Source: Trichoplax adhaerens (Eukaryota > Animalia > Placozoa). Taken from it: 64,000 nucleotides of DNA. Below are positions 55,984 to 64,000 of the stretch, piece after piece (the stretch's first letter is position 1; each line of letters begins with the position of its first letter). The notes below the pieces were generated by a model. It ran no database searches. It worked only from the letters and a program-made list of their open reading frames with translations, and was not told the DNA's origin. A program made the translations under genes and the position numbers. The stretch spans positions 620,001 through 684,000 of the forward strand of contig NW_002060948.1 of NCBI RefSeq assembly GCF_000150275.1. Reading direction: 5' to 3'.

Positions 55984-57344
55984 TAGATCAATTACATTAG
56001 GCTTCGATCGTTACTGAAGCTCAAACTATATTTTAGTTGCAAGCAACCTAAAGATTTTATCGAGACATGGTAGCGATCGTAAAATGTGCATACTTTCGCT
56101 TACTTCAGTTGAAGCCCGACAAGAAAATTTATATAGTTATTTAATTATTTTGAAAAAAAAGCTGCAATAGTTATTTAATTCCGCATTGACGATCGATTAT
56201 AACCCATTCATAAAGAAATTATATACGACGCCTTTTCCGGATCATGCCGCAATGTATACATAGGGTTATATAGTTAAATTTGCAATCGTAGATGTAGTCA
56301 GTATTTATCACCTATATTATAATTTTAAACTACAGAACTTAATGCAGATATATGGTTAGGTAGTTTTATTTTATTGTGTGTACATAGACTAGATCAAACA
56401 TGATAATCTTCGATAATTTAAGGGAATTTTGTATTATAAGACTTCAGTTAAAAGATTGCGGTATTTAATTTTATATGATTTTGATTGCAATATTAAGAAA
56501 TTTGAACAGGCTTAATGTACCAAACCTTCATATTCATGATAGCTGTTGTGATTAGTTTTTTAAGAAAAACGCTTATAATCACCGAGACTAATACAACCTT
56601 TTGCTAGAATTTTTTACGTATCGATTTTGTACGTGTTAAAACTTACATTTATATGATAAAGTCTGCTTATGCGTACGAGAGTACTTTTTGAAGTCGACTC
56701 AACGACTACATCTGAAGAATTATTGCTGCAATGTGACATAGTTTACCATTACAGCATTTCTACAATACTGCCCAAGTTTTATTTGTCTGGCTGGTGCTAC
56801 ACATAAGAAACAGTTGATCATACATAGTTTAACAGCACTCTGTTGACATCACTTAAACAATAACAGCTTTTTTGCAGTGTTAACCTTGGCACAAAATCCT
56901 AACGGAGCCGTTCTTTTAAAGCATATTTTATGTTCTATGATATGACATAATAAATAAGACAATATTCTGTCCCTTTTATACAATATCTTATTTTTTTCAC
57001 GTATTGGTTTGATATCATTTAAAGAAAAGTTTTTCTTTACCATACAGCAAAATAAATAATAATAATGAGCATATATCCTAGCTAGATACTTGTGCTATTA
57101 TTGTCATCACAAGTTATTAAGAAATAATATTAATAGTTGAAATTAATTACGAGTTTGTCTATAGTTAAGGTGATATTTCGAAACAAAGAATCTTGTCGAT
57201 TTTAAAGTACTATTTGCATGCTAGTTGATTACTAATAGTTGAGTAAAATCATGATACACTCTTGTATCAGCTCATTACCTTTACAAGGTTAAGTATAGCT
57301 AGACAAAATAAGTATTTGATTTAAGAATATCAAAGTTCAAATAA

Positions 57345-58751
57345 CTATGATCGCAATGTTTTACAAAATTGTTCTATCATTGGAACAACTTGAGAAGTTT
57401 TGATTTTATCGGAATAATTACATATAAGTACCCCATACGGTAAATTACATGCTATAAGATATGATGGACGATGCTTTGTCGATGAAGTCAGGTAGACGCT
57501 ACAGTAACATTAATCAAACATGAAATTAGCAATATTTAATCGTGGAGAAGCAATAACAGATTACAACGGTATAACTGCTGAGCGTTGGTAAGTATTGATA
57601 GAAAATTAATTTACCCTCAATGAGAGCGAATATCACTATTTAATGTTATAATTCCAGACAATTTAGTAAATACTATGGCAACGAATACATTATTTGTCAC
57701 GAAATGTAGTTCACAATTGAGGATATTAAACTAGGCAGAAGATAACGGTATACAGATATATCAAAAATCCAAACGAAGGCTACCTCCAATATGTCCTCTT
57801 GAAAGTAATAAATCTAATACATTGTCCATTCGTGAATATCAGTTCGAAAGTATTCTGAGGTTGTTCTTCGTCCACTAAAATCAAGCAAATTTTTATAAAT
57901 TGAATATAATACTCTATAACCAAGGCAAAGTTATTAGCTTGTTTGTAGTAGTAAAGAATATAAGTATCGTAGGATTTCTTTTATAAAAATTAATGATTCG
58001 TACATTCTATGAATCTATTTCGTATGATCCAAATATTTGAAGCGATCCATCAACCTAGCTTATTACTTTGTATAGTTATAACCTAATCCTAAGCTTAATG
58101 CCAGCTAATAAGACACACGATATATCTGGTAGTGCATTTTAAAGTATTTTACTACTATGCAAAACTACTGCTTGCATAAAACTGTACAGCTATGACACAG
58201 CATAAACAGTATGACGTTAGCCTTCAAGATTAGAATAGCAATACTGAAGTGCAACGGAAAATAACTTGCACCAAATCGAAACTATCTCTTTATGAAATTT
58301 TAAGGTATTAAAAATGATATTACCGTCAACGGAACAAACTCGCTGGAAGGCAGCAATAAATTTAGCTAGTGAATCCTAATAAATTAAGAACAAATTAAGA
58401 ATATTTGTATTTATTATCCATCTCTCTAAAGAATTTCACATCTTTCGCTGTATGAAAAGCACTAATACCCTATATAATATTTTGTTTATGTCATAGTTCT
58501 ATCTACTAGAGGTCGCTACAGATACGCATATTGGTAAAATTAAGAAATTCTATTTCTATAAATGCTACATTAGTAATATACGAGTACGTATTTATTTAAA
58601 AATATACAATATTAATACTGTGCATTCTACGTTTACGTCGTTTTCAGTTATACTTGTGTGACTGCCTCCAAGGTACCGGCTGCTGTAATAGTATTACCAG
58701 ATTTACTTAATAATACACATCCGTCAATCAATCCTCTTGATAGCAAGTTAT
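57345..58751 (-). CDS. Divergent profilin-like protein, four phase-consistent exons (first coding exon uncertain, candidate 60746-60737)
   Basis: Exons 58751-58654, 58375-58324, 57874-57784 and 57498-57345 with AG/GT borders splice into one frame: (D)NLLSRGLIDGCVLLSKSGNTITAAGTLEAVTQDSLAKFIAAFQRVCSVDVDEEQPQNTFELIFTNGQCIRFITFKRTYWSVYLTSSTKHRPSYLIACNLPYGVLICNYSDKIKTSQVVPMIEQFCKTLRS-TAG. Size and pattern resemble the profilin fold. Confidence 0.7.
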
Positions 58752-59184
58752 CTAAAAATGAATTTAATTTTAGCCTTGCATTTTTATGACATTAACTATC
58801 GCACCAATGTACTATTTTGTATATGATATTAATACTATATGGAAAATAACATGCCATTGCAAAAATATATTGACAGCTAGGATCAACTGTAGTGTAAAAC
58901 CAAGATAAGTCAATTCCACAAAAATCGATGCTATAGACGAGAAAGCGATAAGTTCTTTCTATATGTCATATTCACATGATTGCAAGTATTGAGAATTCTC
59001 ATGGCAAAGTACAGTCAAAAATCGACAATTGATCATTCATAATAACAGTAGAATGTACTATGGATTTTTAGTCATGTAGATTGGCAGTTATTTTTCAGCT
59101 ATTCTGTCGTAAAATTATACTATTATTCAGTTTGGGTAAGAAGCAAATACTGAAAAGTTGTTAGCGTACATTACGTAAATCATT

Positions 59185-60245
59185 AGTTATTATCTAGTTT
59201 ATATCTACAGTCAAAGATCGGATTACAAATTAATCATGTCAAATCTTAGAAATTTGATGATCATCATGAAATATTAGATAGAAAAGCTTACTGCAGAACA
59301 GTAAAACGATATCATTCACATTGCCTTAATTAACGCGTACAGTATACATCAAGCAGTATATTGCGATGAGCACCATTGCTTCTGAGCTAATTGCATAAAG
59401 TACTGTATACGTACAGTCTCGTAGTCAATTAAAGGAAAATTGGATGGCTGTCATGAAATAATTAGACAGAAAACTTACTGCAGAATAACAGAATCATGTC
59501 AATAATATTGCATAGTATTATACCATGGTACTGTGTGCAACAATTGCAGCTATATCTCTCTTGTGGCAGTCGTTGCTTCTGAATCAATTTACAGCATTCT
59601 TTGCAGAAAAGTAAATATTATATGCGTCTACGCGTATAATTATTAAACGTTATCTAGCTCGAATCTCAAGATTAGATTATAAATTGATCCTATCGAATTC
59701 TTAAAACGTAAGGGAAAAATTAGATGATTGTCATGACATTCATCGAATAGAAAAGCTTACTGTAGAACAGCAGAACGATGCCAATAATATTGCTAAGCGT
59801 TAACTTATAACGCAGTGTGCAATAATTCCAACTTTCACTTGTCATATAATAATTACTGTCCGCGTATAATTGAGAATGGATGTGATGAGTATCATGATTT
59901 CTGAATGAGTCAATTGATAGCACATCTCGCATCAAAAGTACACCTAAAACACTCATTATTATCTAGCTCTCATCTACAATCAGAGATTAGATTACATATT
60001 GCTGATATCAAATCTTTAGAACTGCAAGAAAGAAATTGCTAATTGTCATTGAGGATAGAAACAGTCGATAGAAAAACCGACTACAAAACAACCGAGCGAT
60101 CAATATCTAGCTTACTACTGTACTATACCATCATGACAATTATCTCTTATTACTTCCTAATCCGTATAGATAGACAGTAAGTAATATGTTGCGATGATTA
60201 TCACTGTTTCCGAGTCAATTTATAGCATACCTTGTATAAAAGTAT
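59185..60245. repeat. Old degenerate tandem repeat (3-4 units, about 200-300 bp)
   Basis: ttatctag...gattag.atta.a.att at ~59190, 59650 and 59960; tcatga..ta..gatagaaaagcttactg.agaa at ~59265, 59452, 59731 and 60065; gcttctga.tcaattt..agcat..ttg...aaaagta at ~59379, 59575, 59900 and 60206. Confidence 0.7.
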
Positions 60246-60968
60246 CCCAAACCGCCATTGAAATGCGCTCGTTGCATGTCTTTATTTCTTGCTAAACTGT
60301 GATCAGAAGCAGGCACAGTACTGTACTATAGAAGGCACAATGTGCAAAATTAGCTGTCATCTCATTATAGTCTCTTGGTGATAATAATACGTCTATCTGT
60401 CTAGCTAGTAGTGATGACAAAACACGGTCAAAAGGGTGACGATTATTTTACACATTGCCATTGTATTCTAATTTCAGGCAGAGTAGAAAGCCTTTTCCTT
60501 AAAGGACTTTTAATAGTCCTTATTGTAGAGAAAAGTAGTACAAATAACAACAAATGATGATAGCATTCCCCTTTCAAGTTGCTTGCAAATGAAAAATGGA
60601 TAGTCATAGTCATTTTCAGTCTATTTCAGTGGCAGTATAACGTACCATACCATATTATGTTATACTATTGGTGCACTACATGTTGGCCGTATGTTTGCTA
60701 CTATATACTACGGTAGAGTGTTGGTGTAGCCGCTACCTGCGATCATTGCACCACTACTCACATCCAATGGGAAGGTTCAAATTTGGCCAAAAGCAATTAT
60801 TTCCACCTCAAATGCAATTTATTTATTCCATACTATGAATTGCTAGCAATGTTATAGTTGCAATTATGAGTGATACAAGAGCTTTTACGGTTTTGCTAGT
60901 CTTTAATCTGCTGTGTTGTCATGATTTGAAGATAGATGTGTATTGACTGTAATAAATGATTGCTAAAA

Positions 60969-61331
60969 ATGAATTTTCGTCAACGATTGGCTTGGATTTT
61001 AACCTTAATTTATTTAACATGCGGTTGCTATACAATTTATTATACATTCGATAGGAAAAGTGGTTACGGAGAAGTTATTATGCAAAATGGCGATGCTGCA
61101 CCCAATCGATATCCCTCAAGTGTTCAATGGATTGCTAGAGTTTATGATGTCATTCCTAGCCATGTCTGGTTTATCTCTGGAGTAATACTTTATCTAATTT
61201 TCTTTATCGTATTACTGACTCTCACTGCTGCCAATCCAGTCGAATTATTCAATCATTTTATTGGTACCATCAACATTTTTAAACAATCTAAGCCACATCT
61301 ACAGCCAGTTAATGGTATTAGAATGACGTGA
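60969..61331 (+). CDS. LYSET: Lysosomal enzyme trafficking factor LYSET (TMEM251), two-TM Golgi protein
   Basis: Starts MNFRQRLAWILTLIYL..YTIYYTFD (human MMNFRQRMGWIGVGLYL..FYYVFE); second TM IPSHVWFISGVILYLIFFIVLLTLTAANP (human LPFWVW...YLQMFLFLYSCTRADP); 120 aa, single exon. Confidence 0.85.
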   Translation: MNFRQRLAWILTLIYLTCGCYTIYYTFDRKSGYGEVIMQNGDAAPNRYPSSVQWIARVYDVIPSHVWFISGVILYLIFFIVLLTLTAANPVELFNHFIGTINIFKQSKPHLQPVNGIRMT

Positions 61332-63489: not shown

Positions 63490-63932
63490 CTATGAACTGC
63501 TTTGCTTCATTTTATACAAGTTATTAGCAACAGCTTCTCGTAATAATTCAGCTTCATAAGCATCTGCAGAGATCTCCATATCAGTGTTATTGATACCAAT
63601 ACAATTGCTGTTTCCATTATAAAGTACTATCTCATCGTCTGATGACATAAATTCCATGGGTAATCCATTCTCCATTGAACGGCTGATATTGTGCAAGACG
63701 CAACAGGCATGGACAATGGTGCGAACACTTCGAATATCTTTCCGACGAATTAACTTTAATCGTTGGAAACGCCCAATCAACAATCGAAAAGCAGACTTGA
63801 TGTAACTTGTAGCGCAATTATGAACTTCGTTGTAAGACACTTTCCAATGGTAATCATCTCCAGTGATTTGTTTATAAGGTGTAAGTAGCCAAGGTCTTAG
63901 AGGATAACTTTCATCTCCGAGTACGGATACAC
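63490..63932 (-). CDS. PIF/Harbinger transposase-derived (HARBI1/ALP1-like, DDE_Tnp_4) protein, terminal exon; 5' part outside the window
   Basis: Acceptor ttcttag| at 63932, then VLGDESYPLRPWLLTPY...YNEVH...IKSAFRLLIGRFQRL...IVHACCVLHNI, an acidic linker and terminal LREAVANNL, all typical of the family. Confidence 0.85.
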
Positions 63933-64000
63933 CTAAGAAGTAGAGGTAATAGTTGATTTTTTTGCTTAGCACTTGCAAACGTTGAAAGAAAGTAGTAGAA

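Follow-up and report, generated by a model that had tools for sequence, protein, structure and literature searches.

The window is the whole stretch of 64,000 nucleotides of Trichoplax adhaerens DNA that was analysed. On its minus strand lies a gene of five exons, in which all introns are GT-AG and the coding sequence of 423 nt, including the stop, gives a protein of 140 residues. A genome search shows the gene to be single-copy. Its neighbour on the plus strand, in head-to-head orientation, is a homologue of LYSET. The features of the locus are the following:

60969..61331, plus strand: LYSET/TMEM251 homologue, an ORF of 120 aa and the head-to-head neighbour (PF15190, E 2.3e-11, 44.4 bits against a cut-off of 27)
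60737..60746, minus strand: first exon as originally predicted, 10 nt, not supported as coding
60259..60968, 710 bp: intergenic region separating the start codons of the divergent pair, an inferred candidate bidirectional promoter
59268..60340, minus strand: four decayed tandem units of 187-321 nt each
60231..60258, minus strand: exon 1 (coding), ATG at 60258, 28 nt, MAVWDTFIQ plus 1 nt
60230-60229, minus strand: GT donor of exon 1, G/gtatgc
58654..58751, minus strand: exon 2, 98 nt, phase 1 in and 0 out, D/NLLSRGL...EAVTQ, the beta-1/beta-2 hairpin of the profilin fold
58324..58375, minus strand: exon 3, 52 nt, phase 0 in and 1 out, DSLAKFIAAFQRVCSVD, the central helix
57784..57874, minus strand: exon 4, 91 nt, phase 1 in and 2 out, V/DEEQ...KRTYW, beta-3/beta-4
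57345..57498, minus strand: exon 5, 154 nt including the TAG stop at 57347-57345, beta-5 to beta-7 and the C-terminal helix

Exon 5 encodes a hairpin with the invariant motif CNLPYG, and the C-terminal helix bears E132, C135 and R139. Exons 2 to 5 had been proposed from the DNA letters alone, and this part of the original prediction holds: the acceptors are AG, the donors GT, the incoming phases 1, 0, 1 and 2, and there are no stops. The peptides that it listed (CVLLSKSG, SLAKFIAAF, WSVYL, GVLICNY and IEQFCKTLR) are each found in the translated exons. The product is stop-free as claimed, but its length is 140 aa and not about 130. Further, the gene had been described as invisible in the ORF track; this is correct at the default setting, where no ORF of at least 60 aa lies over any exon, and only exon 4 is inside an ORF, one of 47 aa. 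For annotation this means that genes with such short exons escape views that are based on ORFs.

The gene had also been called hidden, which it is not: the public annotation of the sister strain Trichoplax sp. H2 already has a model for it, with a profilin domain match. This protein, RDD44829.1 ("hypothetical protein" TrispH2_002461), has the same start and is identical in 139 of 140 residues, the sole difference being T137 here and I137 in H2. Among the proteins of 77-245 aa that were searched there is no equivalent model for the present assembly, and only that of H2 was found. All tests of the whole protein (Pfam, PDB and fold) were run on RDD44829.1 and thus on a sequence one residue off the model in the window. 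Between the strain of the window (H1) and H2, 2 of 423 exon bases and 38 of 2504 intron bases differ, a divergence too shallow to show selection.

Orthologues are found in an octocoral, bivalves, an annelid and a hemichordate. They are 137-144 aa long, show 31-36% identity and are all unnamed; among them are Mercenaria mercenaria LOC123531390, Dreissena polymorpha LOC127875299 and proteins of Owenia fusiformis, Ptychodera flava and Paramuricea clavata. The profile of this clade was built from 9 sequences, and a third search with the 9-sequence profile gave no new members and no protein with the name PFN4; a word-index search with RDD44829.1 alone returned just itself. Invariant columns in the clade are Y92, C107-G112 (CNLPYG), E132 and R139. 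The Trichoplax protein has all the traits of the clade, namely the CNLPYG hairpin, the S.Y strand, the E..FC..R C-helix and a length of 137-144 aa, but its residue at the position equivalent to W31 is Ile, in contrast to the Tyr or Phe of most orthologues. Introns 1-4 are all at matching position and phase in the octocoral contig, and the bivalve contig matches in the same way at introns 1 and 4. No literature was found on the CNLPYG motif or on a profilin clade of this kind.

The profilin profile of Pfam, PF00235, matches RDD44829.1 with 33.3 bits (gathering cut-off 25) and an E-value of 5.9e-8 over profile positions 3-124 of 127, and it matches nine of nine clade members. Pfam scans exon by exon gave no match, and PDB sequence searches with the exons were uninformative, the exons being too short. 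A profile search of PDB returned seven profilins at E-values of 5e-4 to 1e-2, together with one unrelated protein at a non-significant E of 0.4. The AlphaFold (AF2) model of RDD44829.1, made from an alignment of only 9 sequences, has a pLDDT of 85.6 and a pTM of 0.82. Its predicted topology is H-EE-H-EEEEE-H, with a helix at residues 2-13, the central helix at 42-57 and the C-terminal helix at 124-139. In both structure searches with this model, profilins come first. In Foldseek the top 26 matches listed are all profilins, with TM up to 0.76, and in VIA-align yeast profilin (1ypr) reaches a Z of 15.3 at an rmsd of 2.1 Å over 119 aligned residues. The original assignment to a non-canonical member of the profilin family is thus supported by a Pfam score above the cut-off, by the PDB matches and by a predicted fold that is nearest to profilins.

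The start of the gene is not the one first proposed. There, ATGATCGCAG at 60746-60737 had been taken as the first exon, giving a protein without the N-terminal W/Y start of the helix and a promoter of about 220 bp in common with LYSET. This exon has an ATG, the correct phase 1 and a GT donor, but the exon at 60258-60231 has the right phase and a donor too; further, the 10 nt are identical in H2, though nearly all nearby sequence is as well. The exon at 60258-60231 is the start used by the independent public H2 model, which begins MAVWDTFIQ, and the H2 gene range of 2927 nt fits the distance from the ATG at 60258 to the stop. This start aligns with the N-termini of all orthologues, where the motif [FW][ED]xF[IV] is found throughout, and in the octocoral and bivalve contigs an intron follows right after this motif at the identical codon and phase. 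In the fold model the N-terminal helix is formed by residues 2-13. A coding start at 60746-60737 is therefore very unlikely, while the 10 nt may be a non-coding 5' exon. The claimed removal of the N-terminal W/Y residues falls with it, since the true exon 1 encodes W4 and F7 where canonical profilins have W3 and Y6. This comes close to the very observation that the prediction had named as speaking against it, another first exon that restores a canonical N-terminus. A further ATG, at 60277, was rejected as start: it is out of frame, and its phase meets a stop in exon 2.

Two other readings would take the gene, or the fold, away altogether. A decaying pseudogene or a chance chain of exons might be suspected from the short exons, the single exons without Pfam match and the absence from the default ORF list, but 140 codons are open with canonical splice pairs throughout, the orthologues in four other phyla all have profilin matches and share intron positions, and H2 differs at just 2 exon bases; we regard this as extremely improbable. 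That the protein belongs to the roadblock/LC7, longin or LAMTOR type instead of the profilins has a probability close to nil. MglB, Roadblock3 and LAMTOR chains do occur in Foldseek, with TM 0.48-0.61 when normalised by the query and up to 0.71 when normalised by the target, and a roadblock-type protein reaches a Z of 12.8 in VIA-align. However, these structural matches rank under dozens of profilins (45 profilin entries stand above the first roadblock protein in VIA-align), and what the Pfam and PDB sequence searches give is profilin, with nothing of the roadblock type.

Profilins have a central part in the regulation of actin. Their aromatic poly-L-proline patch consists of W3, Y6, W31, H133 and Y139 in human, with Y5 in S. 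pombe, and the human numbering of aligned positions used here was partly mapped by hand onto the PFN1 sequence. By alignment W4 and F7 are kept, while I31 aligns with the canonical W30 (the W31-equivalent), T137 aligns with the Y of ADYL (the H133/Tyr position) and there is no terminal NSGY; of the five aromatic poly-proline contacts just two are left. The original prediction was thus right that the C-terminal aromatics are missing, and they are absent in every clade member. The residue aligned with S. pombe K81 and human R88 is T94, and it is Thr or Met in the clade, while the basic Lys/Arg of the beta6-beta7 hairpin are replaced by CNLPYG. At the position of human R74 we find K85, mostly basic in the clade, and at that of human R135 the invariant R139; other actin contacts are not reliably mappable at 17-24% identity. 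In S. pombe profilin, K81E has no affinity for actin, and in Y5D the affinity for poly-proline is reduced about 100-fold (PMC2172974).

Canonical profilins (1f2k/2acg Acanthamoeba profilin II, 1ypr yeast, 3d9y S. pombe) have the same length, fold and strand order as the Trichoplax protein, and are also alike in the N-terminal W..F/Y helix, the S-V/I-Y strand, the helix-strand layout and a Leu-Arg near the C-terminus. However, they are just 17-24% identical to it, and they have W31, the C-helix Tyr, the C-terminal tail and the basic beta6-beta7 turn, all of which it lacks. The Trichoplax genome has two canonical profilin loci, in tandem on contig C1414, whose second exon alone scores 97 and 63 bits in Pfam. 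Each consists of two match blocks, consistent with two coding exons, whereas the CNLPYG gene has four introns.

A further profilin locus in the same genome, C1410:6084069-6084727, has three exons and is detected by Pfam exon by exon; a cluster lookup with an exon of it gave generic profilin clusters only. Its peptides presumably resemble human PFN4 far more than those of the CNLPYG gene do, and CNLPYG is absent from it. To our knowledge, PFN4 is the only well-known profilin without actin or poly-proline binding. It has the profilin fold, binds neither actin nor poly-L-proline, and binds phosphoinositides (PMC2694148; PMC8387879); R74 and R135 are conserved in all human profilins, PFN4 included (PMC2694148). 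A likeness to PFN4 can be hypothesized from the profilin fold, the lost classical ligand residues and the basic residues kept at the R74 and R135 positions. There are also differences: in PFN4 the poly-proline site is reportedly lost as a whole, while the Trichoplax protein keeps the N-terminal Trp/Phe, and the Trichoplax protein has 140 aa, while PFN4 falls about 10 aa short of PFN1 in length.

The missing C-terminal aromatics, W31-equivalent and basic actin-contact residue suggest a non-classical ligand binding, as in PFN4, a functional reading that depends on a small number of positions, aligned at 17-24% identity. Could the protein instead still function as a classical profilin, with actin monomers, poly-proline and PIP2 as its ligands, and have diverged only in sequence? 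This would fit the complete predicted fold, W4 and F7, and the positions of R74 and R135, the first of them basic and the second an invariant Arg. However, the genome already has two canonical genes with far stronger Pfam scores, the C-helix aromatics and the last residues are absent in the whole clade, the K81/R88-equivalent is Thr or Met, and the strongest conservation sits in a motif foreign to canonical profilins, so we consider it unlikely. Quite improbable is also that the gene is the placozoan orthologue of vertebrate PFN4, with no separate clade. As the most divergent profilin of its genome, with the classical ligand residues missing, it does resemble PFN4 as described (PMC2694148), but no orthologue was named profilin-4 in the clade-profile searches of NCBI and UniRef names, and the other locus, without CNLPYG, is presumably the more PFN4-like of the two. 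Given this separate, putatively PFN4-like locus in the same genome, mammalian PFN4 is probably not an orthologue, and together with the two canonical loci the putative PFN4-like locus indicates that the CNLPYG gene represents a further clade.

In our preferred reading, the gene encodes a non-classical profilin. With two of five aromatics left, K81/R88 lost and the beta6-beta7 basics replaced by CNLPYG, a non-classical action is most likely. The protein would be a small cytosolic adaptor with a profilin fold, similar in this to mammalian PFN4, and would bind neither G-actin nor poly-proline at normal affinity. The conserved CNLPYG hairpin and C-helix surface might be used for another partner, or possibly for lipid. 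Since W4 and F7 are still there and the W31 position is Tyr or Phe in most orthologues, poly-proline may be bound weakly, and the K/R that takes the place of R74 could yet contribute to a contact with actin.

The gene is real and modestly novel, a member of an unnamed conserved profilin clade that is already deposited as a hypothetical protein. We hold with good confidence that it is an intact, single-copy, five-exon gene of the profilin family in a conserved unnamed metazoan clade, with a non-classical, PFN4-comparable action as the most likely one. More tentatively, and with the odds somewhat against it, this may be an ancient undescribed metazoan profilin clade, apart from both the canonical profilins and PFN4, that has given up the classical actin and poly-proline surfaces in favour of a new CNLPYG/C-helix surface for a different partner and was lost in vertebrates and ecdysozoans. 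If this is true, it would be a second divergent clade, ranging from placozoans to hemichordates, and the profilin fold would have been repurposed more than once early in animal evolution. Partners could be searched for directly by way of CNLPYG, the sharply conserved motif of the surface.

LYSET as head-to-head neighbour was correctly predicted, as its PF15190 match shows, but a promoter in common with start codons about 220 bp apart was not, the distance from ATG to ATG being 711 bp. The H2 record has the same 711-bp spacing and annotates the neighbour as a 120-aa TMEM251 protein. Transcription would be divergent from LYSET across the 710-bp spacer, and co-regulation of the two genes is possible. 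Within flanks of 3-5 kb, LYSET was not found beside the orthologues of other species. No further copy of the tandem unit was found elsewhere in the genome. Unit 1 holds exon 1, and units 2-4 sit in intron 1; units 2 and 3 retain an exon-1-like 3' end, in which the donor is dead.

The gene is real, and so is its profilin nature. We read the minus strand from 57200 to 61300 and translated the exons singly. The four exons originally predicted are all present, with AG acceptors and GT donors throughout and phases in 1, 0, 1 and 2. The window is AT-rich (G+C 30-40%), and the introns are short and GT-AG. Two short upstream exons, the last two entries below, are compatible with phase 1.

Exons and candidate first exons of the divergent profilin gene
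58751-58654, minus strand: exon 2, 98 nt
58375-58324, minus strand: exon 3, 52 nt
57874-57784, minus strand: exon 4, 91 nt
57498-57345, minus strand: exon 5, 154 nt, TAG counted in
60746-60737, minus strand: first exon of the original prediction, ATGATCGCAG, fits phase 1
60258-60231, minus strand: exon 1, 28 nt, MAVWDTFIQ then G|gtatgc

The original prediction had chosen 60746-60737 as the first exon, but 60258-60231 is favoured on four grounds. The gene model of the sister strain, Trichoplax sp. H2, begins MAVWDTFIQ, and its gene range of 2927 nt fits the 2914 nt in the window from ATG 60258 to the stop. In the alignment every orthologue carries [FW][ED]xF[IV]..L[LI] at the exon-1 position. 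In the octocoral contig L002 exon 1 closes with ...F V Q G|gtaatt and the following exon opens with ag|AT AAC, the same codon and phase as in the window gene, and the bivalve contig L001 has a phase-1 intron at the codon of intron 1. Further, residues 2-13 form the N-terminal helix of the predicted structure. The exon at 60746-60737 may be a non-coding leader at most.

ATG 60277 was also considered as a start, but it is out of frame, and reading on from it hits a stop where exon 2 starts. This ATG (60275-60277, minus strand) precedes the start codon at 60258 by 19 nt. Should it be transcribed, it would call for leaky scanning or serve as a short upstream ORF with an overlap.

Four tandem units, all decayed and 187-321 nt long, lie within 59268-60340 on the minus strand, in intron 1 and exon 1; unit 1 holds exon 1. 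In units 2 and 3 the 3' end of exon 1 and the intron start are still recognisable, while the donor is destroyed, AAGGTATG having become GAGATGTG or AAAGAATG. The repeat is local, no further copy being present elsewhere in the genome, and it may be the relic of a tandem first-exon duplication. The gene itself is single-copy in the Trichoplax genome (105.6 Mb, 1414 contigs).

We searched the gene exon by exon. Single exons gave no match in a Pfam scan and nothing meaningful in a PDB sequence search. The language-model features of exon 5, however, pointed to profilin clusters (score 0.89, 198 shared features), and an exhaustive HMMER search with this exon reached a public protein of 140 aa, with 98% identity over residues 91-140. 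This protein, P0001 (RDD44829.1), is 'hypothetical protein TrispH2_002461' of Trichoplax sp. H2. The five exon translations, joined through three split codons, reproduce it except for T137I (139 of 140 residues identical), and it served as a one-residue-different proxy in all whole-protein tests. The original description of the gene as hidden is thus not supported: the sister strain's deposit already carries the protein, with a profilin domain match on record. A word-index search covering proteins of 77-245 aa found no equivalent model for the T. adhaerens assembly. Between the strains 2 of 423 exon bases and 1.5% of intron positions differ, so few that selection is not measurable.

Against Pfam Profilin (PF00235), P0001 scores 33.3 bits (E 5.9e-8; profile positions 3-124 of 127), above the gathering score of 25. 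Against PDB, phmmer returns only profilins, weakly (E 0.16-0.5). A nine-member profile of the clade defined below gives a full-length best match at E 5e-4; seven of its eight matches are profilins, the eighth being trichosurin (E 0.4). The AlphaFold2 model from the nine-sequence alignment (pLDDT 85.6, pTM 0.82) has the element order of a profilin. In Foldseek all rows to rank 26 are profilins (E down to 4e-6, TM up to 0.76), and the Roadblock, MglB and LAMTOR chains rank lower (TM 0.48-0.61 normalised by query, at most 0.71 by target). VIA-align agrees: yeast profilin superposes with Z 15.3 and rmsd 2.1 Å over 119 residues, and 45 profilin entries precede the first MglB chain (Z 12.8). The curated Pfam threshold and the fold match together place the protein in the profilin family, as originally predicted, and the fold searches set profilins ahead of roadblock-type chains.

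A search with profile A1, built from P0001 and three last-exon fragments, recovered full-length proteins that are 137-144 aa long and 31-36% identical. They come from the bivalves Mactra, Mercenaria, Dreissena and Mya (Pinctada as a fragment), the annelid Owenia, the hemichordate Ptychodera and the octocoral Paramuricea. Every one bears the label 'uncharacterized' or 'hypothetical' and has a PF00235 match. The alignment is invariant at L12, G20, G35, F52, S90, Y92, C107-N-L-P-Y-G112, L114, E132 and R139. The octocoral contig has all four Trichoplax introns at identical position and phase, and introns 1 and 4, those checked in the bivalve contig, agree as well; these shared positions point to orthologous genes in Placozoa, Cnidaria and Bilateria. 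In a limited literature search we found no mention of the CNLPYG motif or of such a profilin clade. The clade is unnamed and uncharacterised.

Animal genes also occur on contigs deposited in metagenome assemblies. L001 (ENA metagenome assembly ERZ13706889) holds an animal gene matching a Mercenaria-like bivalve member of the clade, and the metagenome-assembly contigs L002 and L003 (ERZ25071788, ERZ25073769) match a Paramuricea-like octocoral gene. On these assemblies, gene calling of the prokaryotic kind gave the last exon only, as 'proteins' of 48-66 aa.

The Pfam profilin model finds three further loci in the Trichoplax genome.

Further profilin loci
C1414:1582152-1584885 and 1593433-1595613 (pieces L005-L008): two canonical tandem profilins, about 11 kb apart, two Pfam-model blocks each
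C1410:6084069-6084727 (pieces L009-L011): third further locus, three exons

Canonical exon translations at C1414 read MSWQTYI..., W30 and ...ADYLRNSGY. The second copy is far more divergent (second block 63 vs 97 bits) and has Glu-Glu-Leu for Asp-Tyr-Leu in the C-helix. Peptides of the C1410 locus (...LLSTKHV..., ...KYKVVRADKQSVYAK..., ...SSICVEATEKLG...) appear to resemble vertebrate/human PFN4, and the locus is likely the PFN4 orthologue of Trichoplax. If this likeness holds, the window gene belongs to a fourth, separate clade and is not a PFN4 orthologue.

Ligand residues were mapped by alignment to Trichoplax canonical, Acanthamoeba and S. pombe profilins. The N-terminal aromatics had been predicted to be lost; instead, W4 and F7 appear to stand where canonical profilins have W3 and Y6. 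At position W30/31 the window protein seems to have Ile, and the orthologues Tyr or Phe. The predicted absence of C-terminal aromatics stands: the C-helix Tyr (ADYL; human H133 position) is apparently replaced by Thr, and the last three or four residues, terminal Tyr included, appear to be missing clade-wide. T94 probably aligns with S. pombe K81. In that yeast K81E has no actin affinity, and Y5D lowers poly-proline affinity about 100-fold (PMC2172974). The clade-invariant R139 would correspond to human R135, and K85 to R74. CNLPYG presumably sits at the beta6-beta7 turn, as mapped by hand. In PFN2a this turn has basic phosphoinositide determinants at 104 and 107; R74 and R135 are reported to be conserved in all human profilins, PFN4 included (PMC2694148).

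From these positions we infer that the protein could be a profilin-fold adaptor, with classical actin and poly-proline binding reduced or absent, whose working site would be the clade-specific hairpin and the C-helix surface. PFN4, which binds phosphoinositides and neither actin nor poly-proline (PMC2694148; PMC8387879), would be the analogue for this mode of action.

The neighbour is indeed LYSET/TMEM251, on the plus strand with its ATG at 60969 (PF15190, E 2.3e-11). However, the start codons are 711 bp apart, in the window and in H2, and not the 220 bp proposed for the promoter. A putative bidirectional promoter common to both genes is plausible. In the flanks examined for other species, LYSET did not turn up beside the gene. 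Gene order is that of H2: a Harbinger-type DDE_Tnp_4 gene, TMEM251, the profilin gene and an inositol-trisphosphate kinase-like gene. The LYSET/TMEM251 homologue (60969-61331, plus strand) is a single 120-aa ORF whose Pfam match spans only model positions 1-97 out of 131; it is a short form, and is annotated likewise in H2. A 162-aa ORF at 63490-63978, minus strand, heads towards the window edge. The H2 record carries an annotated 370-aa DDE_Tnp_4 (Harbinger-type) transposase gene adjoining LYSET, which indicates that this gene is common to both strains at the same place.
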